Below, one piece after another: positions 1,573 through 33,658 of a stretch of 64,000 bases of DNA. The position numbers and the translations under genes were made by a program. Source of the stretch: Entomortierella parvispora E1425 (taxonomy: Eukaryota > Fungi > Mortierellomycota); contig BQFW01000010.1 in assembly GCA_020891255.1 (NCBI GenBank), positions 124,001 to 188,000 of the forward strand. Direction: 5' to 3'. Position 1 is the stretch's first letter, and every line of letters starts with the position of its first letter. The notes beneath the pieces were generated by a model, which saw nothing but the letters and a program-made list of their open reading frames with translations, ran no database searches and was not told the origin of the DNA.

Positions 1573-4500
1573 ATGTCTTTCCATGTCCCTGGCGAGGAAC
1601 TCGACTTTACCATCTACGGAGGAGCCAACACCAGTCAACTGCAGCTGTCTCCTGTTCAACTGTCCAAGCTGTACAAGCAACAACGCGTCAAGGACGAACA
1701 AGAAGGACCGGATCTGACAGGATACCAAACTGGCATCTTTGATAGGGACCTCGTTGGTAACATCGCACGCGCCTTGTATTAATGGTGTTGTTGTTTGGTC
1801 CAAAAAAAACAACAAAAAAACCAGGCTCTCTTTCCCTTTCTGACACACATCCCTTCATCCTCCCTTTCATTTTTGCACTGATGTTCTTCTTTCGTCTAGG
1901 TGGCCGAGCTTCCCGAGAGAGAAAGAAGAAACGATCCTCGATTGCCTTTGTAGACCAACAACCCCCTTCGAGAGCATCGTCTCAGCAACGACAGCACCAG
2001 GGCCCACCACAGCAGCAACAGAAGCAGAGGCTGCAACAACCCACGCCCTCGTTCATTCTCTCACCAGTAACAGATCAAGATGACGCTGTTGGTGGCACTC
2101 TCAATTCCTCCCCTTCTCCACATCGTCATCCCAACCAGTGCGTATCATCGCCTTCTTCGACCACATTTCCCGCTAATGGCCGTGAGGGAATAAACGATTC
2201 AAGCAAGCACCAACCGAAGCTGCACAACAACAACAACATCGTCAACAATGGCAACTTCAGGGAGAGACAAGAGGAGGTGATTAATGATCTAGGGGTCCTC
2301 GAGGCATTACCTATCCCGACGCTAAGGCCCTCTCTGGCCCGATCCTCCACCATCATCAGCACAGCAAGTTCCTCCGGTCGGCCAAGACTTACCCATCGAC
2401 TATCGTACTTGACCCATCTGGAGGACTTGGAGTCTGAAGAAAAGGAGAATGAAGAGGAGACCACGACGACAACAACAACGACAGCATCATTGTCAGACAA
2501 AGTCGAGCCATCCCCGGTTCATGCAGGGAAGAGCACACCATCGACACCTGCTCCACCCGCGACAGCACCTCCTGCAGTGACGCGTGTTCCCCCCCACGAG
2601 CAAGAGACTGCATCCTCCCGTCGTACAACTTCATCACGACAGCCCCCATCCTCCCATCCCTCAAAGCAGGCCAGTGCTCGCGCTCACGCTAGCGTTGCGC
2701 TGCCCCCTATTGTACCTCCCTCACCGCAAGTAGCTGCACCTCAAATCCCAAAGCTATACAAACGGCTGTTAAGAGTGTTTAGGCCACCATCAGATTCTTC
2801 AGATTCAGACACGGGAGATGTTGGTTCCAGTGCGCTTGAAGGACGAGGTCCAAAACATTGTCGCCATCATCATCATCATCACAAGCAGCACTCTCCTGTT
2901 CACGACGCTACAGCTCAGGTGCGCGGGCCATTTGGCCTTGCTTCCAGTCCCGAGGAGAGTAGCCGTAGCAGCCCAACCAAACACACTCCTGCAGAAAGAC
3001 CTGTCATGTTGCCAGCCCAAGCGTCCACACCTGCACAAAAATCCCCCCCAGAATCCATGGGATTCCGAGCCCGGTTCTTGCGCAAACTGATGTCGTCCCC
3101 TAATCTGAATACTGTCGCGCTTCAGGCACCTACTGCAATTACTCCCCTCTCTACTCGGGCTAACGCCCTGAACAAGATCAACACCCCCGAGAAGAAAGCC
3201 ACGGTTAAAGAGGCACCCCTTTCACCTCTGCTTTCTGACTTTGAGCATGACCTGGCTTGTCCTGCGGGACAAAGGATCAAAGATCGACAGATGAACGCAC
3301 CCTCCCGTGCCTCCACATTGCCTCGTGGCCCTCCCGTCATGCCGACCTTGCAGTCCAAGTATGGCGTCCCCGGTCGAGAACTAGGCGCGGGAACACAGGC
3401 CCAGGTGATGTTGTTGCGTGTGAGATCGACCAAGCGACTGAGGAACTCGTACCCTCTCTGGCAAAGGAACAAGAAAGTGGTCATGCCTACGTCTTCCCAA
3501 CCTTCTCGTTCCACCACACCGACAGCTTCTCCCTTGACATCCGGGACGATTGTGATTCAAGATCGACCTAGCCCCCGAGCGGGCACACCCGTGGACCCGT
3601 CTTCATTGTTGACGCCGCGCTCGAGGACTGGCACGTTGATGACAACGACAGAGGACGAGGTGACCCCAGAGCAAAGAGAGGCCTACCGGAAACGACTTCT
3701 TCGAAGGACCAGCACAGCTGGTGTGTCCATGAACCCAAGCGGTGGCTTGATTTACGCCATCAAAAAGTTCCGCCCTCCAAAGGCTTCCGAGACTCATCGA
3801 CAGTACCTGAAGAAGGTCTGTGCCGAATTTTGCATCTCGACCTCAATGGACCACGAGAACATCATCCGGACCATCGACCTCGTTCGAGATCAGCCAGGCC
3901 AGGAGCTCTTGGACGAGGACAACTTTGACAGCCCCTATTATTCAGATGCAAGAGGTCCGCACAGGGCATCAAGCAAGTCCTCTCGGTCGGCAGCGAGGGA
4001 AGAAGGAGGCGGTAGAAGACACGATGACGCAGGCGGCTGCAGCTGTCCACGGGCTAACCAACGGGGTCGGACGCCAAGGAGCAACAATGGCGACCCAGCT
4101 TTGCCCATGAGATCCAACAGCGGTGCCAACACCTCTCATCATAGCGAGTCTTCTGGTGCTGGATCATCATCGCTCTCATCCAAACTCCATCGGCCCATCC
4201 AGAGAAAGTCTGTCATCTCCAAGCCTCAGCGCAAGCGCTCGGTCGACACGGCCTCCAACCGAGGCTCAGACAGCACACTGACCCCTCAGAACACCAACGC
4301 TCGCGTCATGGGATACTTTAATCACCACCAGCATTCTTCGCCCAACGGACGCGCTCATGTCGGCACAGAGCCCAGCGCGCAGGCCATTGCAGCCGCCAAG
4401 AAGAAGAGGCAACAACAGGAACAGGAGCTTCGACAAAAGGAGGTCCAGCGACTGAAGGCACAGCGTCAACGCGAAAAACTGCAGGCCAAGATGCAACGGT

Positions 4501-5809
4501 TGGATCAGTTCCCGGAATACTGCATGGTCATGGAGTATGCGGCAGGTGGAGATTTGTTCAATCTGTTGACAACGGCCCATCCTCCCATCACATTGAACGA
4601 GAAACAGTGTCTGTGGAGACAGCTTGTGAATGGAGTCCAGTACATGCACAGCATGGGGGTTGCAGTAAGTTTGTAGTTTGTTTGAAGTCTGCAAAAAAAA
4701 AAAAAAAAAAAAAAGGCAAAAGTAGGAACTTGTCCTGATCGACTCATTATTTTCGAACCTTTGCTCATAGCACCGCGACCTCAAGCCAGAGAACATCCTG
4801 ATCGATGCTTCTGGGAGAATCTTGAAGATCACCGACTTTGGAATTGCCAACGTTTTCAAGTCTGTAGGCGATCCCACGCCTTTGCCTTGCAAGGGTATCA
4901 TTGGCAGTGGTAGGTTCTCTGCTCGCTTTTTTTTTTTTTTTTTTTTTTTTTTGGTACTCACGCATGTGTTCAATGTTAGAACCCTACATTGCTCCCGAAG
5001 AATTTTACCAAGAAGAGTACGACCCACGCGCGGTCGATGTTTGGGCCTGCGGCATCATTTTTTATGTCTTGTTTTATTCCGCCATGCCCTGGGCTCGCGC
5101 AGACCGCAAGAAGGACGCGCGATACGCTCGCTACATCGCCGATATCACCAATCACCGCTACAGTGAGGCTCAGCGCCGCATCCAGTTTGAGCGTCGCCAT
5201 CTCTATGGAAGCAAAGCCAACTCCTCCTCCTCTTCATCGGGAGGTGGTCGATCGGATAACCTCAACAAGCCTCATGAGGTGAACCATCATCGCCAGTATC
5301 CGCCTTACAAGCCCAGCGAGATCCATATCCCCAAGCACAATGGTCACAACCAGGTTGTCGCGTCTTCGACCGCTACTTCTTCCTCCAACAGTGGATCCCC
5401 CACCAGTCCCTGGAGTCAAGATGAGACAATGACACCTCATACCTCTGCCGAGAGTTCGCCCGTATCCCCCCTCAAGCCAGCGACAGGCACTGCGCTGGAC
5501 TGGTCCTCTGTGACCCTCCCTGCGTCTGCGGTCCCTATAGCCAACCCACCTGTGATCTACAACACGTTCGCGTACAATGGTCATCTCGGTGGCCACGAGT
5601 TCATTGACCGGATCGAGGCGCCAGGCTGCCGACGGGTCTTGTACGCGATTATGGAACCAGATCCAAAGAAACGACTCACGATTGAGCAAGTCCTGGCGGA
5701 TGAGTGGGTGAGCAAGATTCGATTTTGCTCGGATGAGATGGAAAAGCCAACATTGCAGCAGCAACGAGAGCACCATCGACACTTTCAGCCAAAACCTGTT
5801 CGAAATTGA
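1573..5809 (+). CDS. Ser/Thr protein kinase, HAL4/SAT4/HRK1 (Npr/Hal)-like, 4 exons
   Basis: Exons 1573-1756, 1900-4664, 4771-4909 and 4980-5809, with phase-consistent GT..AG introns. Motifs: ELGAGTQAQV, YAIKKF, AEFCISTSMDHENIIRT, VMEYAAGGDLF, HRDLKPENIL, KITDFG, GSEPYIAPE, DVWACG. Confidence 0.9.
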
Positions 5810-6774
5810 TGACAAATGAACGACAAATAGTCTAAAAAACGTAACAAAGCTTTGTTTCGTCAATGACCGATAAGAAAGAGAAGCAGAGGGATGGGAGGAA
5901 ACAGATTGTTTGAGTAAGATGGGTAATTGGATCGCAGGCGGGTCGCAATTCAGGAGTGGGTGCCTTCATGGCTATGCAGTGAATGGCTTGAAAGTTTCTC
6001 CCTTTCAGAATGCTGCTGGAGACATGCGTCTGGATAATATACGAAAAATAACTACACAGCCCAAATGCACCTTACTCCTCGCCCTTTTCCTTCTTTCTAC
6101 TGTTTCCCAGTCCTTGAGCTCCCTAGTTCTCTCTCTCACCCTTGCTCCCCTTACCCCTGATCTCCCCAGTTTCAATGCTTATGTTTGCCGATCTTTCTGG
6201 GATCTCCATGGCCTTTTACCTCTCCCCTTCATCTGTCCCTTTCATCTCTTTCTCTTCCATTGGTTCCTTTCGGCTTTTTCCCTTTCATTAGTCTCTTTTT
6301 CCTCTCTCCCTTAAATCTGTCCCTTTCGGCTTCCTCTCTTTCATCACTCTCTTATACCTCTCTCCCCTGGTCTTGTCCCCATTTCTGTTTCTCTCGGCTT
6401 GCTCCTTCCATCTCTTGAGCGCCCTGCAGTCTTTGAACTGGGGTCATATCCAATTGTTGTCTGGCAGTAACTTAATGCCCCTGGTTCTTTTCAGCCGTCG
6501 TCACCTTTAAAAGGCAGGCCATTCCGTTCGACAAAAAAAAGACATTCCAAAAGAGCACACTTTCTGCGACGCACCAATAACCCCTCACATCAAAGAACAT
6601 CCAAGTCATTCTCTCAAAGAAAGCTGTAAGATCCCTCTCTGCACCTTCCTGGGTTTGATAAATACCTTGCAAACCGCCGAGAAAAACATTTTCCCAAGAG
6701 GGGCTGCCTATATGAACTGACATTTTTTTTTTTATCATCTCAACTGCCTCGTTCATCCACCCTGGAAAACAGCC

Positions 6775-7026
6775 ATGCATCAAAACAAGAGCACGATTCT
6801 TTTTATTATCGCCTCTTTGCTTTTTATGGCTCTGGCTGTACACGCACAGACAAGGACCAAATGTCAAAAACAGGCACGAGCTGCGATGCAGGGCGAATTT
6901 AAACCGAGGTGTGATTCGAATGGCGATTTCGCCAAGGTCCAGTGCGACAAGGAGGGGCGCTGGTGTGCCGATAAACAGGGCCGAGTGCTCACCAAGCCTG
7001 TCAAGGGAACTCCCACATGTGCATAG
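6775..7026 (+). CDS. Small secreted thyroglobulin type-1 (thyropin-like) protein A, 83 aa, 5 Cys
   Basis: Signal peptide ending ..LAVHA, then TKC..FKPRCDSNGDFAKVQC..GRWCADKQG..GTPTC. This matches the Tg1 pattern PxCxxxGxF/YxxxQC..(C)WCxxxxG..C. Confidence 0.8.
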   Translation: MHQNKSTILFIIASLLFMALAVHAQTRTKCQKQARAAMQGEFKPRCDSNGDFAKVQCDKEGRWCADKQGRVLTKPVKGTPTCA

Positions 7027-7558
7027 AGGGATTATCCTTGTTCGTCTCTCTTTTTTTGCACTGCTTTTTTTTTGAGACGAGATCTGAATTCTACTTCACT
7101 GGTTGTGTAAATAAACCAGAAAAAAAGTCAGGACCCAGCATCTTTTGGAAAGGGTCGTGTAAAGCTATTCCTTGATTCTTTCCATAGTATCTTTTCTTGC
7201 ACGTACCCTCTTCCTCCACTTGTCTACTAGTGCTATTCTCTTACATCGTTCTCTGCTCTAGGAAGGGATCGATCAATATTTTTTCTTCCTGGACCAATTC
7301 CTTGAGGCGGAAAAAGGTCGTGAAGAGAATCCAGAGACTTCAAGGCGTAGCGTGAGAAAACAATGTCACTAACGGCAGTGGCTTCCCTGGTGGACCAGAT
7401 GGGATAGACAGGAAAGGTGGAATATTAATTCAGGCTGCGTGCGATCAAGGCAGCCGATCTCTGGGGGAAAAAAATCACCAGAACCACGGTTCCAAAAATG
7501 CTACGATTTTGGTTGTATCGACTTCGGAAAAAAACGAGAATCGAGGCACCACAGGGTG

Positions 7559-7800
7559 GTCGACAATGACACCCCATGGCTATGCCGAGAGTTCGCCCGT
7601 ATCGTTCCTCAAGCCAACGATAGGCACTCCTTTGGATTGGTCCTCTGTGACCCTCCCCGCTTCTGCGGTCCCTATAGCCAACCCACATGTGATCTACAGC
7701 ACATTCGCGTACAATGGTCATCTAGATCTAGGCTGTCAGGAGTTCATAACTCGCACCGAGACCCCGGATTACCGACAATTGCTGCACACACGATTATGGA
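7559..7800 (+). pseudogene. Old, diverged fragment of the kinase last exon
   Basis: MTPHGYAESSPVSFLKPTIGTPLDWSSVTLPASAVPIANPHVIYSTFAYNGHL..EFITRTETPDYRQ aligns with kinase 5426-5665, with many substitutions and a frameshift. There is no upstream kinase sequence. Confidence 0.85.
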
Positions 7801-8482
7801 AGGCGATCGGACGAAAGGGTGTGTTTGAGAGAAAAAAAAAAGAAAGAGTGACTAATGAGCGACGCGGGTGCCCCTTCATTATTTTTCAGCTTCCTATGAC
7901 TTGAATGGGTATGACTTCTGAAGTCGGCCAGGTCACCAGGGTCGTCATACAACCCATGATTTCACCGTCCTTGCCCCTGACCTGATCTCACCGTTCTTGC
8001 CCCCTGACCCCACTGCCTTTTTTCTTTCTTTTAGCATGTCTGTCCCCGATCTCTCTGTCTCTTTTCTCGCTTCGTCTCTGCCCTTGCTCTCAGTCCCTGC
8101 TCTGGCACTCCTGTTGAAAAATCCCAGTATTTGGGAGTCACTCCTCGTTTTCCATTCCTTGCGCGTGTCGTGTTCCCATCCCCTATTTTTTTTTTTTTAC
8201 TTAAAAAGCGAACTCACATCTGATTCTGTCAACTCTTATAATAAACTTTCAACGGCATTCTCAACAACTCTTTTATCAGCACCCAACACCCTCACCCAAG
8301 AACCGCCTCCTACAAGAACCATCCAAGCAGCCTCTCAATAATCGTAATGGCAGACACATCCCCTTTGAAACACAATAGGCACTCTACAAACATCCACACC
8401 TGCCAGCCTCGATCTTGTGAACGCAATTGAGCTAACGCCTGGACTACGACGCTTTCCTTCATGTTTTAATTCGTTTTAGAGT

Positions 8483-8773
8483 ATGATGCTTCAAAACAAG
8501 AACACGACTGGGTTCATTGCAGCTCTCCTCCTTGGCTTTGCCTTGGTTGCGAACGCCGCCACACAATGTCAACTCAAAAGATCATTGACGATAAACTCTT
8601 CCCGCGGTTTTGTATACGAATGTACCGCCAACGGCGAGTATGCCCATGTCCAGTGTGGTCAAATTAGTTATACGGGCCCGTACCTTTGCTGGTGCTCCAC
8701 TCGCGATGGTGTTAAGCAGACCCCAGTCATCCAGGACGTCACCACCCTTGATTGCTCGCAGTACCCTTACTAG
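8483..8773 (+). CDS. Small secreted thyroglobulin type-1 protein B, 96 aa, 6 Cys
   Basis: Signal peptide ending ..ALVANA, then QC..YECTANGEYAHVQCGQ..LCWCSTRDG..LDC, containing the QC and CWC signature with six Cys. Confidence 0.85.
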   Translation: MMLQNKNTTGFIAALLLGFALVANAATQCQLKRSLTINSSRGFVYECTANGEYAHVQCGQISYTGPYLCWCSTRDGVKQTPVIQDVTTLDCSQYPY

Positions 8774-9451
8774 TATCCTGCGCAATAAAGACCTTGGACG
8801 TCTCGAATTCCTAGAAAGTCGTTCTCACCACTGTTCTGATTAACAATCCGTCAAAAATACACGATGGCATGTTCATTATCACCAATTATTGCCAGAGTGC
8901 TCCTCGATGCCGTAGCTATTTTCCTTCATTCATCTTTTTGATCTTTTTTTTTTCTTGCTCGGAGAATGGCCGATCCGATAATCCCAATAAGGCTCATGAC
9001 GGGCTGCCAGTCCTGGCTTTGTAGCTTGTTTTGGAGGGGTCGCTTCGGCTTTGACTGGCTGCTCTTGGACTCATCTTCTTTATTCTTGTTTCTTCCCTTT
9101 GCTCTTCTTGCCTAACTTGCGTCAGGGAGGAGCTAATCAATTTTGCAAGTGGTCCCTTCTCTCATCTTTTCTCTCTCCGTTTTTGACGCCTTCGTTTTTT
9201 GGGAGCATTCCCCACACTTATAGGCAGGCGCCTCCTAGCGCTGTCTGCAATACTTAGAACAATACCCGCCACAGAAACACACTGACAGCAACACCTCGAT
9301 AACACTCCCAGGCTCGCTGCGGCCATAAGAACCAACAGAAAAAACATCCCCAAGAAAGCTGTAAGAAGTCGCCTCATTCAAAAAATACCGGTCTTGCTTT
9401 TGCAATGGCTGACCCTGGTTTCCCTCCCATCCATTTACCGTCAAAGTAACA

Positions 9452-9677
9452 AAGCGCCAAAACAAGAGACAGGAGTATCGTTTTTTTCCGTTGCGGCCAC
9501 CGTGCTGAACACGGTGTTGGTTGCAAATGCCCGGCAGTTCAGCCGAGATGCAATCGCGATGGCCCCTACGCTCCAATCCAGTGCCGTGATAACAAGGACG
9601 GCATTCAGTTTTGCTGGTGTGCCGACAGTGATGGAAACCAGTGCAACAGGGCCCAACAAGGCACCCCTAATTGTTAG
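9452..9677 (+). pseudogene. Thyroglobulin type-1 pseudogene (A-type)
   Basis: The position of the start codon reads AAG (AAG CGC CAA AAC AAG versus ATG CAT CAA AAC AAG in copy A). A signal remnant ..VLVANA lies in one frame and QPRCNRDGPYAPIQCRDNKDGIQFCWCADSDGNQCNRAQQGTPNC* in another. The Cys1 helix is missing. Confidence 0.8.
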
Positions 9678-9799
9678 TTGCGGGGTCTTCCTTCAAATGA
9701 TTGAATTCTATAATTTCTATTCGACCTGATTATCAGGAATAACCTGATTATCCGGAATAAATTAATCCTGATTTTCCGTTAATAAATCAAAGATCCCTG

Positions 9800-10520
9800 C
9801 TTTTTTTTTTGGTACTTACGCATGTGTACAATGTTAGCCTACATTGCTCCCGAAGAATTTTACCAAGAAGAGTACGACCCACACGCAGTCGATGTTTGGG
9901 CCTGCGGCATCATTTTTTATGTCATGTTTTATTCTGCCATGCCCTGGGCACGCGCAGACCGCAAGAAGGACGCCCGATACGCTCGCTACATCGCTGATAT
10001 TACCAATCACCGCTACAGTGAGGCTCAGCGCCGCATCCAGTTTGAGCGTCGCCATCTCTATGGAAGCAAAGCCAACTCCTCCTCCTCTTCATCGGGAGGT
10101 GGTCGATCGGATAACCTCAACAAGCCTCATGAGGTGAACCATCATCGCCAGTATCCGCCTTACAAGCCCAGCGAGATCCATATCCCCAAGCACAATGGTC
10201 ACAACCAGGTTGTCGTGTCTTCGACCGCTACTTCTTCCTCCAACAGTGGATCCCCCACCAGTCCCTGGAGTCAAGATGAGACAATGACACCTCATACCTC
10301 TGCCGAGAGTTCGCCCGTATCCCCCCTCAAGCCAGCGACAGGCACTGCGCTGGACTGGTCCTCTGTGACCCTCCCTGCGTCTGCGGTCCCTATAGCCAAC
10401 CCACCTGTGATCTACAACACGTTCGCATACAATGGTCGTCTAGATCTAGGCTGTTGGAGTTCATGAGTCGCTCCGAGACACCGGATTACCGACAGTCGCT
10501 GCACACGATTATGGAAGATG
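9800..10520 (+). pseudogene. Orphan copy of kinase intron-3 3' end plus last exon
   Basis: 9800-10436 is nearly identical to about 4945-5580, including the poly-T tract, acceptor, and PYIAPE..DVWACG..FAYNG. After about 10437 it switches to the diverged version seen at 7717-7800. Confidence 0.92.
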
Positions 10521-11174
10521 ATCGGACGAAAGGGTGTATTTGAGAAAAAAGAAAAAAAAAGGAAAAAGTTGGCTAATGAGCGAGCGCGGGTGCCCTCTCA
10601 TTTTTTTCAGCTTCCTACGACTTAAATGGTTATGACTTCTAGAGTAGGCTGGGTTACCAGGCTCGTCAGATAACCATGATCTGATCCAGCGTTCTTGCCC
10701 CCTGACCCCGTTGCCCTGTTTCTCTCTTTTAGAGTGTCTGTCCCCGATCTCTCCGTCTCTTTTCTCGCTTCGTCTCTGCCCTTGCTCTCAGTCCCTGCTC
10801 TGGCACTCCTGTTGAAAAATGTTCCAGTATTTGGGAGTCACCCCTCTTTTTCCATCCCTTGCGTGTGGTATGTTCCCATCCTCCATTTTTTTTTTACTTA
10901 AAAGCGAACACACATCTGATTCTGTCAACTCTTATAGTCTAATAAACTTTCTCAACAACTCTTTTATCGGCACCCAACACCATCGCTCAAGAACCGCCTC
11001 CTACAAGTACCATCCAAGCAGCCTCTCAATAATCGTAATGGCAGACACATCTCCTTTGAAGCTACAACAGGCACTCTGCAAACATCCACACCTGCCAGCC
11101 TCGATCCTGTGAATGCAATTGAGCTTACGCCTAGACTACGACGCTTTCCTTCATGTTTTAATTCGTTCTAGAGT

Positions 11175-11474
11175 ATGATGCTTCAAAACAAGAACACAGT
11201 TGGGTTCATGGCAGCTCTCCTCCTTGGCTTGGCCTTGGTTGCGAACGCCGCACCAAAATTAACAAAATGTCAAGCCTCAAGAGGTATCGCGCAAGGCACT
11301 GGCTATGGTTTTGAATACGAATGTACTGCCAATGGCGAGTATGCCCATGTCCAGTGTGGTCAAATTAATGGGGAGGGCCCGAACGTTTGCTGGTGCTCCA
11401 CTCGCGCTGGTAAACAGCAGGGCCCAGACGTCGAGGGCGTCACCACCCTTGATTGCTCGAAGTACCCTTACTAG
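11175..11474 (+). CDS. Small secreted thyroglobulin type-1 protein B', 99 aa, 6 Cys
   Basis: Paralog of 8483-8773: signal peptide, then TKC..YECTANGEYAHVQCGQ..VCWCSTRAG..LDCSKYPY. Confidence 0.85.
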   Translation: MMLQNKNTVGFMAALLLGLALVANAAPKLTKCQASRGIAQGTGYGFEYECTANGEYAHVQCGQINGEGPNVCWCSTRAGKQQGPDVEGVTTLDCSKYPY

Positions 11475-11890
11475 TATCCCGCGCAATAAAGACTTTGGAC
11501 GCCTCGAATTCCTAGAGAGTCGTTCTCACCCACTGTCCTGATCAACAATCCGTCAAAAATACATGATGGCATGTTCGTGGGCGCTTTTTTTTTCTGTGCT
11601 CTTCTGTCTCTCTCTCCGTTTCTACTGTTGCCCGACATTCTCTTTTCTCTGTCTGTCCCTTTCCACAGACTTTCTCTTTCTGGGTCCCTTTCTCCGTTTT
11701 CTTTGAGGAACATACACATTTAAAAGCAGACACATCCCAACGCTGTCAGCAATACTCAGAATAACACCTGCCCCCAAAAAACACTTGCAGTAACACCTCG
11801 ATAACCCTCCCAGGCCCGCTGCCGCCACAAGAACCAACAGAAAGAACGTCCCCAAGAAAGCTGTAAGGAGTTGCCTCATTCAAAAATACC

Positions 11891-12031
11891 GGCGGCGCTT
11901 ACGCCCAAGTCCAGTGCCGCCTTGATAACAAGGGCGGCATTGAGTTCTGATGGTGTTCTGACAGTGATCGCAACCCGCTTACCAGGTCCCAAAAGGGTAC
12001 CCCCAGTTGTCCGCGGCGATTCCTACCATGA
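11891..12031 (+). pseudogene. Thyroglobulin type-1 pseudogene remnant (A-type)
   Basis: Reads GGAYAQVQCRLDNKGGIEF*WCSDSDRNPLTRSQKGTPSC, with TGA at 11948-11950 replacing the first Cys of CWC. About 165 bp, including the signal peptide, is deleted relative to the 9452-9677 copy. Confidence 0.8.
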
Positions 12032-12304
12032 GGCCAATCTGACTGATTATCCTTGATAAATTAATCCAGACTTTCTATTCATAAATCAAGAAGGGATCCT
12101 CGATCGGGGCGTCCTTGGTTCTCCCCCACATCACACCACACGGAGCAGAGGCCGAAGCCCGGCTCCGATCATTGGGATCCTTGCTCTTTCTCCCTTTCTC
12201 TTCCCCACACGCCTTTGCTACTTGCCTACTTCCCTTTCTTCATTGTTCATTGTTCATCTCATCCCTCCCAATCCCATCCTCACTCTACTCCCCTTCTCGC
12301 ATCA

Positions 12305-13447
12305 ATGCATGTCCAAGACAAGGTCGCCATCATCACAGGAGGCTCATCGGGTACAATCCATGTCTCATCGCACCCATGCACCCTCATCAACCATAGAGTC
12401 TCAAGTTCATTCCTCTTCCTCAGCATGAATTCATCCTTGACTCACTCATTCCACTTTGCCTGACTCGTCTCTTGTCCCTTCCTCCCTTTGATTGATAGGC
12501 CTCGGTAAGGCTCTGGCCGAGAGACTCGTCAGCAAAGGGTAACCACGGATAGGGCTCAAAAAGTTTGCAGCACCAGCCATCACCAGAACTCTTGAACTTA
12601 CACTCTTTGTTTGCACTCCCATCCTGTCTTCTTGCCCCTCGAAACTTCAAATAGTGCCAAGGTCATCCTCGGTGATATTGACATGAAGGATGGCGTCCGT
12701 GTCGCCAACGAGCTCAACTATGGGTACAGTCAAAAAAAAAAATTAACCGACCATACCGATGACAGAATCGATCGAGACGACTGATATTCTACCTCTCCTA
12801 TTTTTCCTTTCCTTCTGCTCAAACACAGCAAGGACAAGGAGGTCGCATACTTTTTCCAGTGCGATGTCACGAAATACGACCAGCAGGAAGATCTGTTCAA
12901 GGCCGCGTACAAGCACTTTGGAGGCGTGGACATCATCGTCAACAACGCCGGTATTGCCGAGAACGCACCTCTGTGGGAGGACGAAAAGGGCATCTGGAAG
13001 AAGGTCATCGACATTGATCTCTCGGCCGTGGTCGAGGGCACTCGTCTGGGTATTGAGCATCTCAAGAAGCAAGGACGTAGCGGTGTCATCGTCAACACAG
13101 CCTCCTTGGCCGGTCTTTACCCTCAGTCCCGGACACCCGTCTATTCTGCAGCCAAGTTTGGTGTCGTCGGTTTGACCCGATCATTCAAGGGATTCGGCCA
13201 GGGTATTCGCGTCAACGCCGTTGCTCCTTCGTTTGCAGACACAAAGATCATTGCGCCTATCAAGGATGCGGTCATGAAGATGGCCCCTCTGGTCACCGTC
13301 GAGATGGTCACGGACGCTTTTATGTTGTTGATCGAGGACGACAGCTTTGATGGAGATATCGCCAGAATTACTCCGCAGTACGGTATCTCGGTCATGGGTC
13401 GCCCTGCCCCCGGCAGCGCCAAGGCTGGCAAGAAAGCCAAGCTGTAA
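12305..13447 (+). CDS. Classical short-chain dehydrogenase/reductase (15-hydroxyprostaglandin dehydrogenase-like)
   Basis: Spliced MHVQDKVAIITGGSSG|LGKALAERL, VILGDID, CDVT, DIIVNNAGI, IVNTASLAG, catalytic YSAAK, IRVNAVAPSF. Confidence 0.9.
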
Positions 13448-25213: not shown

Positions 25214-25640
25214 TACCCTCTCATTCCTGTCCTCGGTCGGTCCTTTACTTTGAGCAGTTGGATCCTTCTCCACTATTTATTCACTAGAACGACAGGAATG
25301 CAACCTTGTAATATAGACAAATGAATACAATACCACTCCCAAATCCACTAACTGCCACAATAGGGGGGAAGGGGGGGAAAGCGCTCCTCTCATGAGTTTC
25401 TTGTTGATTGGGCAAAAGGATGTCTAGGGTCAGGGAATGTCTAGGGTCAATTGAAGCAAGAATTGGAATGTATACAGACACTTTTGTTGCATAATTCCCA
25501 TGCAAGGCAATCTTGATAAGGTGAAGGGTCGACAGAAAGCTTTATCAAGGGTCAATCGTTTGGCAAGAAGATCTACTCATGGGTATATACGATAGACTGC
25601 TATGCTGCTATGTTCACCCTACGTGGTGCTCGATGCTGGC

Positions 25641-26366
25641 TTAGAAGCCCACCTGAATGTCGTAGCCATCTGGCAACTTCTTCAAGATGAATCCGGCCTT
25701 GCCAACGCAGTCGCCGTACTCGTACACACTGGTGATCTCTCCGCCGCTGGCGCCCTTGGTCCTCGAGGTGGGGTTATAAAAGATGACCTCTGTCTTCGGC
25801 AAGGATTCGCAAGTGTGCGCGGGCTGACCGTCCCAGATGTAGTACTCCACAAAGCCCATCTGTCCATTGACAATCTTTCCAGCCCCGGCAGGCAAAGTCC
25901 ATTCACCAATCACGAACGACTTTTTCGTGACCGTATCGGTCAAGGTCCCTCGCCAGGTCGTGCGGCCAATGTTCCTAACTTCAATGCTATAGGTATGGTT
26001 GTAGTCGCCGGGGATATCGAGGGCACAGCTCACACCAGGGCCGCCATCTGCACCTGCGTGACAGTTCTTGTGACGGGTGGTGGTCCCGGCCTGGAAGGAG
26101 GAGAAGGCGGCGTGGACCACGCTCTTGCCGTTGACGTCTTCGCGGGGCTGGAGGCCCGTGTAGCCGACATCGGTGACGTTTTTGAAATTGAACTGTTCTG
26201 CAAAATAAAAGCCGCTTTTGTGAGGGGCCTTGGCCATGTTGAAGGCGAACGAGATGTCGTTCAAACCATCCGCGGGGGCGGTCTTGAAACTCCAGTTGTC
26301 GCCGACGAGTCCAAAGGCGAGAGAAGGGGCGCAGAGCGCGAGAAGAACAGCGGCATTGAGCTTCAT
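25641..26366 (-). CDS. Secreted 241-aa beta-rich protein of unknown function, copy 1
   Basis: ATG at 26366, signal peptide MKLNAAVLLALCAPSLA, intronless, four Cys in the mature part, GYTGLQPR, GADGGPGVSC, GFVEYY. Confidence 0.88.
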   Translation of the reverse strand: MKLNAAVLLALCAPSLAFGLVGDNWSFKTAPADGLNDISFAFNMAKAPHKSGFYFAEQFNFKNVTDVGYTGLQPREDVNGKSVVHAAFSSFQAGTTTRHKNCHAGADGGPGVSCALDIPGDYNHTYSIEVRNIGRTTWRGTLTDTVTKKSFVIGEWTLPAGAGKIVNGQMGFVEYYIWDGQPAHTCESLPKTEVIFYNPTSRTKGASGGEITSVYEYGDCVGKAGFILKKLPDGYDIQVGF

Positions 26367-27685
26367 GGTGGAGGTTTTGTTTGCTTGAGAAGGAGATGTG
26401 GAGGTCAATGATGGAGGAAGTTGGAGTTGGGTTACCCCCTTTTATCAACTTTTTTTTTTTTTTACATTCTCTTTCGTACCTGAAAATGCGCCCGTTCAGC
26501 GTCACTAATCCCTGGGATTCCCATGTTCCAGAAAAGGCCAAACTAACAAACACAGCAGAATACCAACATTGTTGGCAATGTAGATCCCTCTTTCCAATAT
26601 TGCCCAAATGTACTCCCTCATGTAAAGAGATAGAGAGAGAGAAATGGAGCTTTTTTGTCTGACTAACTGCTGGCCCACTCTGTTGTATGTTGGCCCTCCC
26701 AGCAGCAGGGTCAGAAACCATCAGGGTCCACAATTTGCTGCAGTTTACTGACTTCTATCGTGAAAACCAACTCAGACGACGTGCAATGCATATGACCCTT
26801 CCATTCTACATTGAGAGAGCTACCTCAGTTTGCATAGCCTGGTCTCACTCTTTTATTTTCGCATTTTCATACCTCTTAGTGATATGACAAGGTAGCTGGA
26901 AGCTTGGACTAGCGTCGAAACGAAACGAGTTTTTTTTTTTTCTTTTTTTTGGTTGGGCTACTCTCTCTCTTGAGGGCCTGACTAATCCACCTTGAATTCG
27001 AGAAGCGCCCTTTGATGTCGAACTGTAGTGCTGTACTCCATGGCTACCATGGTCGTTACGCAAAGGACCCGGTTCTTGATGGCGCGATCTCTATATTCGT
27101 AGTCGTTGGTGGTTTCACAGCCTCTGCAGCCCTTTGGCCATCCTTGTTGGATAGTGAAAAGCCACTTCAATGTTGAGAAGTGGTAAATGCTGTTGATACG
27201 CTAGACTGGTCGATCCTTGGTGGGTACTCCAAAGTCCATCTATGTTTGGGCAATGATCCCGACCCCCCTCTTGTGAGTACATGCCCCTGTCTGCCATGCC
27301 CCTCTCTACGATTATCAATCACTGCGTCAAGCTAGATATAATTCTGGGTCGTGTGAATATTCTCCGATTCTGGACTGAGGGGCTTGGCTGTAGTCCCACA
27401 CTTCGTCTATGGTTGCAAAGAACAACCCACGCAGACCATCTGTCCACACCCAATGGCTATTCTTTCTAGATATGGACAGGAGTTAGGATATACCTTCAGT
27501 TCTAGAGAATCCGTACTTGTGTGGGCCGATGGCTTCGTTAGGAAGGAACAAAGATCCTGAGGTCGATGCCTGGGAGCGACAGAAACGACCTCGCACGCCA
27601 TGGATGCCACCAAGCGCACCGCCGCATCCCATGCGGGCGCCTCTCTTCGTGAGGGCAAAGCAACACGGGGAGCAAGCGGGAGGGA

Positions 27686-28684: not shown

Positions 28685-29410
28685 TTAGAAGCCAACCTTG
28701 ATGTCATAGCCGTTCGACAACTTCTTCAAATTGTATCCGGCCTTGCCAATACAGTCGCCGTACTCGTACACCTTGGTGACCGCTCCGCCGCTGGCGCCCC
28801 TGGTCCTTGAGGTGGGGTTGTAGAAGATGGCCTCCGTCTTGGGCAAGGAATCGCAAGTGTGCGAGGGTTGACCGTTCCAGATGTAGTACTCCACAAAGCC
28901 CACCTGTCCATTGACAAGCTTTCCAGCCCCGGCAGGCAAAGTCCATTCACCAATCACGTACGACCTTTTCGTGACCATATCGGTCATGGTGCCTCGCCAG
29001 GTCGTGCGGCCAATGTTCCTGACCTCAATGTTGTAGGTGTGGTTGTAGTCGCCGGGGACATCGATGGCACAGCTCACACCAGGGCCACCATCCGCGCCTT
29101 GGTAACAGTTCCTGTGACGAGTGGTGGTCCCGGCCTGGAAGGAGGAAAAGGCGGCGTGGACCACGTTCTTGCCATTGGCGTTGGGGCGGGGCTGGAGACC
29201 TGTGTAGCCGACATCGGTGACGTTGTGGAAATTGAACTGTTGGGCGAAATAAAAGCCGCTGGTAGTAGGGGCCTTGGCCATGTTGAAGGGGAACGTGATG
29301 TCGTTCAAACCGTCCGCGGGGGCGGTCTTGAAACTCCAGTCGTTGCCGACGAGGCCAAAGGCGAGAGAAGGAGCGCAGAGCGCGAGAAGAGCGGCGGCAG
29401 AGAGCTTCAT
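28685..29410 (-). CDS. Secreted 241-aa protein, copy 2
   Basis: ATG at 29410, MKLSAAALLALCAPSLA, 726 nt, colinear with copy 1. Confidence 0.88.
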   Translation of the reverse strand: MKLSAAALLALCAPSLAFGLVGNDWSFKTAPADGLNDITFPFNMAKAPTTSGFYFAQQFNFHNVTDVGYTGLQPRPNANGKNVVHAAFSSFQAGTTTRHRNCYQGADGGPGVSCAIDVPGDYNHTYNIEVRNIGRTTWRGTMTDMVTKRSYVIGEWTLPAGAGKLVNGQVGFVEYYIWNGQPSHTCDSLPKTEAIFYNPTSRTRGASGGAVTKVYEYGDCIGKAGYNLKKLSNGYDIKVGF

Positions 29411-30813
29411 AGTGGAGAAAGAGAAGAGAATAAGTAGGAAGGAGGTTTTGTTTGTTGGAGAAGGAGTTGTGGAGGTCAATGATGGAGGAAGTTGGGGTTG
29501 GGTTGCCCCCTTTTATCAACTTTTTTTTTCGTACCTGAAAATGCGCCCGTTCAGTGTCATTAATCCCTGGGGTTCCCATATTCAAGAGGCCAAATTAGCA
29601 AACACAGCAGAATACCAACATTGTTGGTAATGCAGATCACTCCTTCCCCTATTGCCCAAATGTACTCCCTCATGTAGAGAGATATAGAGAAAAAATGGAA
29701 AGTACAGCTTTTTTGTCTGACTAACTGCTGGCCCACTTTGTTGTTTGTTGGCCCTCTCAGCAGCAGGGCCAGAAACCATCAGGGTCCACAATTTGCTGCA
29801 GTTTACTGACTTCTATCGTGAAAACCAACTCAGACAACGTGCAATGCCTATGATCCTTCCATTCTACATTGAGAGAGCTACCTCAGTTTGCATAGCTTGG
29901 TCTCACTCTTTTATTTTCGCATTTTCGCCTCTTTGTGGGATGGGATGGTCACACAAGCAATACAACATGCCAAAGGGTAATTTCGAGCGTGGACGCAAAG
30001 TTATATTGATGCCATGGTATCTCTTGGTGATATGATAAGGTAGCTGGAAACTTGGACTAGCGTCGAAAAAACGAAACGAGCTTTTTTGTGTGGGCTACTC
30101 TCTCTCTTGAGGGCCTGACTAATCCACCTTGAGTTCAAAAAGCGCCTTTTGATGTCGAACTGTAGTGCTGTTCTCCATGGCTACCATGGTCGTTACGCCA
30201 AGGACCCGGTCTTGATAGCGCGATCTCTACATTCGTACTCGTTTGGTGGTTTCACAGCCGCTGCGGCCTTTTGGCCTTTCCATGTTGTATAGTAGAAAAG
30301 CCACTTCTAAGTTGAGTGGTGATGGGCAAGACTGGTCAATTCCTGGCAGGTATTCCAAAGTCTATCTATGTTTGGGCAATGATCATGACCCCCTCTTGTG
30401 AGTACATGCCCTCGGTCGGCCCTTTGCTTTGAGCAGTTGGATCCCTGTCCACTATTTATTCTCTAGAACGACAGGAATGTAATCTTGCAACATAGACAAA
30501 TGAATATAATATCAATCCTAATCGCTTGCAAGACCTCTCCGCTGACTGCCACAATACGGGCGGAGAAGCGCTGAACTCATGACTTTCTTGTTCATTGGGC
30601 AATGGAATATCTAGGATCAATTGAGGCGAGAAATGAAAGGCATGTTGTTGGGCAGACACTTTTGTTGTGTAACATCATCTCGACAAGGTGGATGGTCGAG
30701 GGAAACGGTCGAGGGAAACACTTTCTCAACTGTCAGTTGTTTGGCAAGAAGATCTATTCATTGGTATATACTATAGACTACTATGTTCACTCTACGTAGC
30801 GCCTGATGCTGGT

Positions 30814-31539
30814 TTAGAAGCCAACCTTGATGTCATAGCCATTCGACACCTTCTTCAATTTGTATCCGGCCTTGCCAATGCAGTCGCCGTACTCGTACAC
30901 CTTGGTGACCGCTCCGCCGCTGGCGCCCTTGGTCTTTGAGGTGGGGTTGTAGAAGATGGCCTCTGTCTTGGGCAAGGAATCGCAAGTGTGCGAGGGTTGA
31001 CCGTTCCAGATGTAGTACTCCACAAAGCCCACCTGTCCATTGACAAGCTTTCCAGCCCCGGCAGGCAAAGTCCATTCACCAATCACGATCGACTTGTTCT
31101 TGACCGTATCGGTCATGGTCCCTCTCCAGGTCGTGCCGCCGATGTTCTTGACCTCAATGTTGTAGGTATGTCTGTAGTTACCGGGGACTTCGATGGCACA
31201 GCTCACACCAGGGCCGCCATCTGCGCCTTGGTAACAGTTCTTGTGACGGGTGGTGGTCCCGGCCTGGAAGGAGGAAAAGGCGGCGTGGACCACGTTCTTG
31301 CCATTGGCGTTGGGGCGGGGCTGGAGACCCGTGTAGCCGACATCGGTTACGTTGTGGAAATTGAACTGTTGGGCGAAATAAAAGCCGCTGGTAGTAGGGG
31401 CCTTGGCCATGTTGAAGGGGAACGTGATGTCGTTCAAACCGTCCGCGGGGGCGGTCTTGAAACTCCAGTCGTTGCCGACGAGGCCAAAGGCGAGAGAAGG
31501 AGCGCAGAGCGCGAGAAGAGCGGCGGCAGAGAGCTTCAT
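30814..31539 (-). CDS. Secreted 241-aa protein, copy 3
   Basis: 726-nt ORF; the N-terminal half is identical in protein to copy 2. Confidence 0.88.
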   Translation of the reverse strand: MKLSAAALLALCAPSLAFGLVGNDWSFKTAPADGLNDITFPFNMAKAPTTSGFYFAQQFNFHNVTDVGYTGLQPRPNANGKNVVHAAFSSFQAGTTTRHKNCYQGADGGPGVSCAIEVPGNYRHTYNIEVKNIGGTTWRGTMTDTVKNKSIVIGEWTLPAGAGKLVNGQVGFVEYYIWNGQPSHTCDSLPKTEAIFYNPTSKTKGASGGAVTKVYEYGDCIGKAGYKLKKVSNGYDIKVGF

Positions 31540-33658
31540 AGTGGAGGAAGAGAAGAGACTAAGTGGGAAGGTTTGTTTGCTGAAAGAAGAATTGTGGAGG
31601 TCAATGTTGGAACAAGTTGGGGTTGGGTTGCTCCCTTTTATCAGTTTTTTTTTCTTTTTCGTTCCTGAAATTGAGCCCGTTGGGTGTCATTAACCCCTGG
31701 GATTTCCATGTTCGAGAGAAGGCCAACCTAACAAACAAAGTTGGAAAACCAACAATTAAGAGCAGATCACTCCTTCCCCCATTGCCCAAATGGGCTCCCA
31801 CCCTCATTTAGAGAGATAGAGCTTTTTTTGTCTTACAAACTGCAGGCCCACTTTGTTGTTTGTTGGCCCCCCAGCGACAGGGCCAGAAACCATCAGGGTC
31901 CACAATTTGCTGCAATTGACTGACTTCCATCGTGAAAACCAACTCAGACAACGTGCAATGCATATGACCCCTCCATTCTACATTGAGAGAGCTACCTCAG
32001 TTTGCATAGCTTGGTCTCACTCTTTTATTTTCGCATTTTGGCCTCTTTGTGGGATGGGATGGTCACACAAACAATACAACATGCCAAAGAGTAATTTCGA
32101 GCGTGGACGCAAAGTTATATTGATGCCATGGTACCTCTTGGTGATATGATAAGGTAGCTGGGAACTTGGACTGGCGACGAAAAACGAAACGAGCTTTTTT
32201 GTGTGGGCTACTCTCTCTCTTGAGGGCCTGATTAATCCACCTTGAGTTCAAAAAGCGCCTTTTGATGTCGAACTGTAGTGCTGTACTCCATGGCTACAAT
32301 GGTCGTTACGCAAAGGACCCGGTTCTTAATGGCGCGATCTCTATATTCGTACTCGTTTGGTGGTTTCACAGCCTCTGTAGCCTTTTGGCCATCGATGTTC
32401 GATAGTAGAAAAGCCACTTCTATGTTGAGGAGAGGTAGATGTAGTAGACGCGCTAGACTGGTCAATCCCTGGTAGATACTCCTAAAGTCCAAAGTTCCCG
32501 ACCCCTTTGAGTGTATACCACTCTCTACGATTACTAATCACTGCGTCAACGTGGGTACTATTCTGGGTCTTGTCATGAATAGTCTCCGACTCTAGACTGT
32601 GGTGCTTGGCTGTAGTACCACAGTTCGTCTACGGTTGAAAAGAACAACCCACCCACACCGCCTCCCTTTAGCTATTCCTACAGGCAGAAAGAAGTTATGA
32701 CATGCCTTCAATTCAAGAGAACCCGCGCTTGTGTGGGGCCACTGGCTTTGTTGGGAGGGAGCAAAGAACCTACGACCGCTCTGCGTTTAGCGGTTTCCGC
32801 CGCCCTGTTCTCCAGTCAGAGAAACGGGCGACAAGATATCGCACGTGATGAACGCCACCAAGCGCACCGCCGCGTCCCATGCGGGCGCGTTTCTTTGCGG
32901 CACAAAAGAAAAGGCAAAGCAAAAGGCAGACGGGGAGGACGCACATGGGTCGAGAGCGCATTGTTTTCGTCCTTCCGCATTTCCCCACGCTCCATTTGTC
33001 CACATTACTCATTCTCCTCTTCATCATCAGGCAGCCTGTCTGCTCGTTTCCTTCTTTCATTTGGTTTCTCCATTCTCTTTCTTCAATTACTCGCCCAGAG
33101 AAACAACTCATTCCATCTCGACTGGCAGAGTGCTTGGAACTGTAGGTAATCTTGACATGGGAAACAGGGCCTGGAGGTAGAGTAGAATCCTTCCCATAGA
33201 TTAACCCCGCCAGGCGCCTTTAGTGTTTCTAGAGGGTCAGTCTATCCTGGATTCGCTACTTTCTGGACTTCACTGCCACCGCAACAAAGAAGCAAAGAAT
33301 CGGTCTTTGACATCTGACTTTTGTACCTTCCGGGCATCCTGACGCTGGTTGGTAGTCGAGGTTGATGCCGGAACTCTTTGTGGTCTAGGAATGTTCTTGT
33401 CTTTAACAGTATTTTCCTCATTACGACCAAAGGGACAACTTTCAGCATCCAGAAGTCAAGCATAGGCTACGCCAGCGCGACCTCAGTAGGAGTAACTTTC
33501 TCAGTCATTCACCTTGCGTCTCAGTCCTGACAGTTGACAAAGGGGATCAAACTGATCCAAAGGTAATGTCATATCTCTACTTTATACCGTTCCTCATGGC
33601 CAGCCATTAATTCTGACATCTGCATTATTGTCAATAGTCTCTCCACAGATTGCAACAG

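Follow-up and report, generated by a model that had tools for sequence, protein, structure and literature searches.

A young tandem family of stand-alone thyroglobulin type-1 proteins, predicted to be secreted, in the early-diverging fungus Entomortierella parvispora

Thyropins are protease inhibitors built on the thyroglobulin type-1 (Tg1) domain, in which a wedge of three loops fills the active-site cleft of papain-like proteases (PMC7863939). Inhibitors that consist of Tg1 domains only, or that were excised as a single domain, include equistatin, the salmon egg inhibitor, the tick protein IrThy and the p41 fragment (PMC7863939, PMC10889554), the last of which inhibits cathepsins L and V at the picomolar level (PMC7863939). 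The p41 fragment (MEROPS I31.002; PDB 1ICF) is the prototype single-domain thyropin: it is one Tg1 domain of ~65 amino acids (aa) with the six-cysteine type-1A framework and a helix plus a three-stranded sheet, and it derives from an alternatively spliced insert of a vertebrate membrane protein. Equistatin of the sea anemone (three Tg1 domains), IrThy of tick saliva (two Tg1 domains; PMC10889554) and the U24-ctenitoxin-like proteins of spiders and scorpions are composed of a signal peptide followed by Tg1 only, and these invertebrate stand-alone thyropins are secreted to act on the proteases of another organism. Arthropods also have small single-domain Tg1 clusters, of 88-102 aa, as was seen in a cluster search of AFDB and the ESM Atlas. 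In a survey from 2006, Novinec and colleagues reportedly treated the Tg1/thyropin family as specific to Metazoa. Here we describe an array of Tg1 genes in a fungus, Entomortierella parvispora E1425. The array is encoded within the 64,000-nucleotide (nt) stretch of contig BQFW01000010.1 (assembly GCA_020891255.1) that was analysed as a whole and is referred to as the window (positions 124,001 to 188,000 of the contig); all coordinates below are those of the window. We find that it is a native, at least partly expressed and young fungal family of stand-alone Tg1 proteins, with secretion predicted.

A six-frame scan of the whole window with hidden Markov models (HMMs) reported Tg1 segments at exactly five places, all of them on the + strand and inside 6.8-12.0 kb, with no further hit rising above noise. 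Three of the segments are open reading frames (ORFs), which in the ORF listing for 6000-13000 each run from ATG to TAG; the other two, at 9516-9674 and 11888-12010, belong to decayed genes that we named psiA and psiB and delimited by the HMM and by alignment to copy 1.

6775-7026, + strand: copy 1 coding sequence, 83 aa; signal peptide of ~24 aa and a 59-aa Tg1 domain; Pfam score 38.0 bits
8483-8773, + strand: copy 2 coding sequence, 96 aa; signal peptide and a 71-aa Tg1 domain with six cysteines; 29.9 bits
11175-11474, + strand: copy 3 coding sequence, 99 aa; signal peptide and a 74-aa Tg1 domain with six cysteines; 24.9 bits
9352-9677, + strand: psiA, decayed gene of the copy-1 type
11851-12010, + strand: psiB, decayed gene of the copy-1 type

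The first-pass annotation of this DNA, made from the sequence alone, had listed three intact genes of 83-99 aa that encode a leader plus a single domain, and five copies in all on the + strand within 6775-12031. The ORF listing and Pfam agree with the former and the six-frame scan with the latter. Its description of the genes as intronless holds for the coding sequences, but the transcripts carry an intron in the 5′ untranslated region (UTR), described below. The three ORFs begin with a short polar stretch, a hydrophobic core of 15-17 residues and then an AXA-like site (...AVHA/Q, ...VANA/A), and from these leader features all three intact copies are predicted to be secreted, as mature proteins of 6.5-8 kDa.

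The assignment of the copies to Tg1 was borne out at several levels. All three ORFs scored above the curated gathering cut-off of Pfam PF00086 (Thyroglobulin_1; 20.6 bits), with E-values of 1e-9 to 1e-5, and the precomputed PF00086 match of EMPS_07270, a deposited protein whose C-terminal 96 residues are identical to copy 2, agreed with our scan. We built a search profile from the four open domain frames (copies 1-3 and psiA) and ran it against all PDB sequences. It matched thyroglobulin (E 3e-42, several repeats), saxiphilin (3e-12) and the p41 fragment (1icf_I, 6.6e-9), followed by IGFBP-1 to -6, EpCAM and Trop2, with a marginal match to TRIM21 (E 0.008) as the last. The copy 3 domain was modelled by AlphaFold with a pLDDT of 92.9 as a helix (residues 6-17) and three strands (34-37, 46-50 and 56-62), from an input alignment of 110 Tg1 domains, so that the model was guided by Tg1 domains themselves; from the single sequence alone the pLDDT was just 51.6. 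With this model as the query the best 36 Foldseek matches in the PDB (E up to ~1) were all Tg1-containing entries, and VIA-align returned Z-scores of 9.2 for thyroglobulin and 8.7 for saxiphilin, compared with at most 2.7 for chains without Tg1. The comparison with p41 that the first-pass annotation had proposed gave a superposition on the cathepsin L-bound form at a Z-score of 7.7 (2.4 Å over 61 residues, 31% identity). Structure searches of the AFDB clusters and the ESM Atlas likewise retrieved only Tg1 among their top matches, from animals where the taxa were labelled. By HMM, profile search against the PDB and predicted fold, the copies are true Tg1 homologues with a modelled Tg1 fold.

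Copies 2 and 3 have the type-1A framework, C...YEC..NGEYAHVQC...CWC...C, and thus resemble the p41 fragment in domain architecture. They differ from it and from the closest aligned animal domains in carrying CWCS in place of CWCV and in a C3-C4 loop that is four residues longer than in those domains. Copy 1 has departed further. Its mature domain has five cysteines, the first cysteine of CWC (Cys4) is gone, leaving WCAD at this position, and its C3-C4 loop is six residues shorter; this loss is a derived state, because psiA keeps both CWC and the six loop residues. The cysteine pattern that had been ascribed to every intact copy therefore stands for copies 2 and 3, each with six cysteines, and not for copy 1. 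In contrast to p41, the fungal domains are predicted to be free secreted gene products; and while the invertebrate thyropins have two or three domains and measured inhibition constants (Ki), the fungal proteins are single-domain, known from sequence alone and at best 30-39% identical to any outside domain.

Direct-repeat analysis and global alignment revealed how the array was built. A unit of ~2.7 kb is present twice, at about 7562-9790 and 10280-12089, and each unit comprises a 3′ fragment of a protein kinase gene, a gene of the copy-2 type and a pseudogene of the copy-1 type. The intact kinase gene and then the live copy 1 stand upstream of both units.

7562-7846, + strand: kinase 3′ fragment at the start of unit 1, 84-89% identical to 5425-5646 and to 10280-10561
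9822-10561, + strand: second kinase 3′ fragment, of which the part common to unit 1 starts at 10280, the start of unit 2 (10280-10561 aligned to 7562-7846 at 88-90% identity)

The region of kinase-derived sequence ahead of copy 2 can also be given as 7440-7846. Within the second fragment, positions 9855-10154 are 97% identical to kinase positions 5000-5299 while the adjoining parts are 84-89% identical, a contrast that suggests recent gene conversion. The 211-aa gene annotated in GenBank as 'Pkinase' (9831-10466) corresponds to this copied 3′ end of the kinase gene (1573-5809; 1305 aa) and is probably a pseudogene. Between the end of the kinase gene and the 5′ exon of copy 1 there is also a CT-rich tandem repeat with a 28-nt unit (6223-6362, ~5 units that are 64-71% alike).

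Both decayed copies carry lesions that account for their loss. psiA has lost its ATG and its intron acceptor and retains the end of the 5′ exon and the donor (GT at 9361); relative to copy 1, its leader has gained 8 nt, and an out-of-frame deletion of 46 nt has removed the part with the first cysteine and the helix and shifted the frame of the leader remnant. Its domain frame at 9513-9674 is still open (...CPAVQPRCNRDGPYAPIQC...FCWCADSDG...GTPNC-stop). psiB also keeps the 5′-exon end and the donor (GT at 11863), followed by a deletion that extends from inside the intron to the middle of the domain, so that the remaining domain part (11879-12010) lacks the leader and everything upstream of the G-x-Y-A-x-V-Q-C motif, and a TGA at 11948 replaces the first cysteine of CWC. 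The 14-mer that joins the 5′-exon end to the donor, AAGAAAGCT followed by GTAAG, has just three occurrences in the whole window, one each at copy 1, psiA and psiB, which assigns both pseudogenes to the copy-1 lineage. Judged by sequence, the array is made up of two subfamilies, a copy-1 type with one live and two dead members and a copy-2 type with two live members. The earlier proposals of two decayed copies and of a birth-and-death family are thus well founded: the former show deletions, a frameshift and a stop, and the latter is seen as segmental tandem duplication, two pseudogenes and loop-focused divergence of the youngest paralogues.

As Tg1 is otherwise overwhelmingly animal, we asked whether the array could reflect contaminating animal DNA or a misassembly. 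The contig is 1,814,996 bp long, with fungal genes on both sides of the array, and the duplications carry pieces of the neighbouring fungal kinase. Independent short-read contigs of DNA run X1 contain the array at a depth that is uniform (~78) in unique parts and the same as in the flanks. The third-codon-position GC content (GC3) of the Tg1 ORFs, 0.55-0.59, is in keeping with the 0.52-0.55 of neighbouring ORFs, the introns are of fungal type, and the closest outside domains share just 30-39% identity with the copies. Co-duplicated kinase pieces, even depth, native GC3 and fungal-type introns together exclude contamination, and we consider an artefact of either kind to be vanishingly improbable.

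Evidence for transcription came from run X2, which shares its sample with the genome run, bears the label 'DNA?' (a guess) and comprises 24 Mb of contigs. In one X2 contig of 157 nt the last 101 nt equal 6773-6873 with no mismatch and span the first 99 nt of the copy 1 coding sequence, whereas the preceding 56 nt differ from the adjoining DNA; the last 30 nt of this part map uniquely to 6596-6625, joining 6625 to 6773. The joint has no counterpart among the contigs listed for X1, which retain the intron stretch. Reading the contig as RNA-derived, copy 1 is transcribed and the intron in its 5′ UTR is spliced, although the evidence is thin. Corresponding introns were predicted for the other two intact copies.

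6570-6625, + strand: 3′ part of the non-coding 5′ exon of copy 1, from the X2 contig (the start at 6570 follows from the 56-nt length)
6626-6772, + strand: 5′-UTR intron of copy 1, 147 nt, GTAAGA...CAG, with a branch-like ACTGAC and a T-run; skipped in the X2 contig
8344-8479, + strand: predicted 5′-UTR intron of copy 2, 136 nt, GTAATG...TTTTAG, with branch GCTAAC; used by the GenBank model
11035-11171, + strand: predicted 5′-UTR intron of copy 3, 137 nt, GTAATG...TTCTAG, from alignment to copy 2

The introns end 2 nt before the ATG in copy 1 and 3 nt before it in copies 2 and 3. The copy 3 intron aligns at 93% identity with the upstream region and intron of copy 2, for which the junction in the GenBank model (8343/8480) is the predicted one. 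Two small X2 contigs cover psiB at 11851-11997 without mismatches and unspliced, so psiB is probably transcribed at a low level. The depth of the X2 contigs is low (3-4), and no X2 contig lies over copy 2, copy 3 or psiA. With an exon-exon junction that has canonical GT...AG borders, X2 behaves like an RNA-derived library of the sequenced strain and could serve as an expression source for other genes of the genome.

The two live members of the copy-2 type allowed us to examine how the domain evolves after duplication. Their mature domains differ at 44 of 210 aligned nt. By the Nei-Gojobori method, 39 of these differences are non-synonymous and five synonymous (dN 0.287, dS 0.116, dN/dS 2.5), while dN/dS in the signal peptide is 0.6. 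Against the neutral expectation the excess gave p = 0.04 in a one-sided Fisher test and p = 0.053 in a binomial test. The DNA of the domain is 79% identical between the two copies, compared with 91% in the 484 nt upstream, 92% in the signal peptide and 93% in the first 100 nt downstream (domain versus upstream, p = 6e-5). Thus dS matches the divergence of the flanks and the domain has diverged 2.3 times more than its non-coding flanks, findings that speak against both gene conversion by a distant paralogue and simple relaxation. The changed residues are distributed over the domain as follows.

C1-C2 segment: 11 of 17 residues changed between copies 2 and 3
C2-C3 core (TANGEYAHVQ): 0 of 10 residues changed
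C3-C4 segment: 5 of 10 residues changed
C5-C6 segment: 8 of 19 residues changed

All six cysteines, ECTANGEYAHVQC and CWCSTR are unchanged, and the sole indel is in frame. We take this as a modest signal of loop diversification, and the family is apparently under positive selection. The same data bear on a less favourable interpretation, by which the family is dying and the three ORFs are recent remnants without function whose high dN/dS comes from relaxed constraint. Two of the five copies are already dead, copy 1 lacks a conserved cysteine, copies 2 and 3 are not covered by any X2 contig, and the excess of dN over dS is of borderline significance. Relaxation, however, predicts a dN/dS near 1 and a divergence no greater than that of the flanks, contrary to what was found; the cysteines and core motifs have stayed intact, and the lone indel in frame, despite 21% nucleotide divergence, whereas the dead neighbours decay by frameshifts, deletions and stops; and copy 1 is transcribed and correctly spliced. 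We therefore judge a dying family to be very improbable and retain the reading of a young family under diversification.

To place the family among other Tg1 proteins we combined several database searches. In word-indexed protein searches, for which copy 1, copy 3 and a profile of four sequences served as queries, the single match was copy 2 of the window itself. An exhaustive HMMER search of 1.84 billion cluster representatives gave 1345 hits at E up to 1e-3. The best 150 of the 1345 by summed score were mostly multi-domain animal proteins, with EMPS_07270 as the sole single-stretch hit; ranking by summed score favours multi-domain proteins, and weaker single-domain relatives from fungi could not appear among these 150. 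The next best single domains among the matches listed scored at most 54 bits, and those with names were a sea-urchin SMOC and a scorpion U24-ctenitoxin-like protein; of the other outside matches listed per domain, one was an unlabelled protein with a SMOC-like domain set (P0116) and the rest were unlabelled marine or metagenomic sequences. No confirmed relative emerged when JGI metagenome contigs and 185,579 genomes of bacteria and archaea were scanned for the pattern. The database searches retrieved no homologue from another fungus, an absence from protein sets that means little because two of the three intact genes here are themselves unannotated.

The closest outside domains align at 30-39% identity and so give no hint of a recent donor. 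From 71 aligned columns of 110 Tg1 domains we obtained an unresolved maximum-likelihood tree, with long fungal branches and no sister group that could be named, and monophyly of the four fungal sequences was not rejected (AU test, p 0.63). The phylogeny with animal domains that had been suggested at the outset is therefore compatible with a single fungal clade and leaves horizontal transfer and ancient origin side by side. Our literature searches, too, brought up no publication about Tg1 or thyropin proteins of fungi. The view of the array as undescribed accordingly holds for copies 1 and 3, which are unannotated, and less so for copy 2, which already has an automatic label in UniProt/NCBI.

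We are very confident of the structural and evolutionary part of this explanation. As for activity, a thyropin-type protease inhibitor is the most likely one, and we give it about an even chance. Inhibition is the simplest reading because the proteins are (by prediction) secreted, single-domain Tg1 proteins with diversifying loops. In such a mechanism, a rigid wedge held by three disulfides would insert its loops outside the cell into the cleft of papain-like cysteine proteases and possibly of aspartic proteases too. Likely targets would be proteases of arthropod or nematode grazers, of amoebae or of competitors, or the fungus's own secreted proteases, and loop diversification would amount to a retuning of specificity. 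The copies do have the three inter-cysteine loops, which are where the changes between copies 2 and 3 lie, and the lengths of these loops differ from those of p41. Several observations weigh against inhibition. Inhibitory and non-inhibitory Tg1 domains cannot, to our knowledge, be told apart by any residue signature, and for this reason sequence cannot decide the matter. The odd number of cysteines in copy 1 may mean early decay, and copies 2 and 3 depart from the animal domains by the four extra residues of the C3-C4 loop and by CWCS. The dN/dS test is borderline (binomial p 0.053) and draws on just 44 differences. RNA evidence for copy 1 is one contig of low depth from a run labelled 'DNA?', and copies 2 and 3 have no X2 contig. 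More generally, Tg1 has been described as a scaffold just 'occasionally employed as an inhibitor', and inhibition has been shown for few Tg1 proteins (PMC7863939).

The last point, together with the matches of IGFBP-1, -2, -4 and -6, EpCAM and Trop2 at scores similar to that of p41, would equally suit a non-inhibitory binding module, like the IGFBP C-domains or EpCAM/Trop2, for a small ligand, glycan or partner protein on the surface of the hyphae or during interactions with plants, insects or bacteria; loop diversification, too, is expected at any binding interface. Such non-inhibitory domains are, however, typically found inside multidomain proteins, whereas most Tg1 proteins described as free-standing or as tandem repeats of this domain alone are inhibitors (the p41 fragment, the salmon egg inhibitor, IrThy and equistatin), and the duplication unit here contains neither a partner domain nor a co-duplicated partner gene. 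We hold a binding module to be rather unlikely.

The small size, predicted secretion and disulfide-rich character of the products could also point to antimicrobial or toxin-like peptides on a Tg1 scaffold, which would hit membranes or channels of competitors or grazers. Consistent with this, the copy 1 domain is basic (pI 9.6), copy 1 has sub-threshold Pfam matches to the Conotoxin and defensin-like families, and one of the better outside matches is the scorpion protein named U24-ctenitoxin-like. These Pfam matches, however, are below the curated cut-offs and fall on the leader, pI values of 6.8 and 5.7 make copies 2 and 3 neutral to acidic, and venom proteins of the U24-ctenitoxin type are themselves thought to be thyropin-type inhibitors, which counts against a toxin. 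We consider this interpretation improbable and keep protease inhibition as the preferred one.

A more specific scenario is that Entomortierella acquired or retained an animal-type thyropin domain and turned it into rapidly diversifying secreted inhibitors directed at cathepsins from the gut or the immune system of soil animals. Members of the genus are often isolated from arthropods. We regard this scenario as unlikely; if true, it would mark the first case of a thyropin system in a non-animal and, next to the mycocypins, a second answer to grazing at which fungi arrived independently. Mycocypins are cytoplasmic proteins of mushrooms and have no signal peptide. Their proposed ecological role, the blocking of papain-like proteases of grazers (PMC7863939), resembles the role considered here, but these inhibitors (clitocypin, I48; macrocypins, I85) are beta-trefoil proteins of about 16-19 kDa, in contrast to the disulfide-rich Tg1 products of 6.5-8 kDa. 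Membership of the copies in the mycocypins was rejected, as no Pfam family but PF00086 matched above threshold and the fold matched Tg1 only.

Irrespective of the activity, the family extends the known range of the Tg1 fold to an early-diverging fungus. With domains of 59-74 aa the copies offer the smallest natural single-domain Tg1 proteins for studying how loops relate to protease specificity, and, as a possible means by which a fungus defends itself against soil animals, they can be put to the test. They also expose an annotation gap. Neither copy 1 nor copy 3 is annotated as a gene in GenBank. The gene at copy 2, EMPS_07270 (a hypothetical protein at NCBI, 'Thyroglobulin type-1 domain' in UniRef), was deposited as a chimeric model of 166 aa, in which a kinase fragment (approximately 7566-7706) serves as exon 1, non-coding leader up to 8343 as exon 2, and the stretch from 8480 onwards as exon 3. 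With just one of the three intact genes in the deposit, and that one joined to a piece of a pseudogene, surveys of protein databases would undercount fungal families of this kind.

Around the array, GrpE is encoded just upstream of the window start, TIP49 and the 1305-aa protein kinase upstream of the array, and three short-chain dehydrogenases downstream. No functionally linked neighbour was evident among the genes looked at, which included a WD40/ARM protein and a myotubularin phosphatase. The ORF at 57933-58604 covers the propeptide of an M14 carboxypeptidase and the beginning of its catalytic domain, and is thus one exon of a gene for a secreted zinc carboxypeptidase; 46 kb separate it from the Tg1 array, to which it has no evident link. 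Further ORFs of 240-270 aa are found at 25602-26411 (+ strand), 28685-29479 (- strand) and 30814-31539 (- strand), and the two that were scanned (25602-26408, + strand, and 28685-29476, - strand) had no Pfam match. At 33650-39295 the window contains an uninterrupted ORF of 1881 aa with a region of ARM-like repeats and C-terminal WD40 propellers, an unusually long intron-free ORF for this genome.

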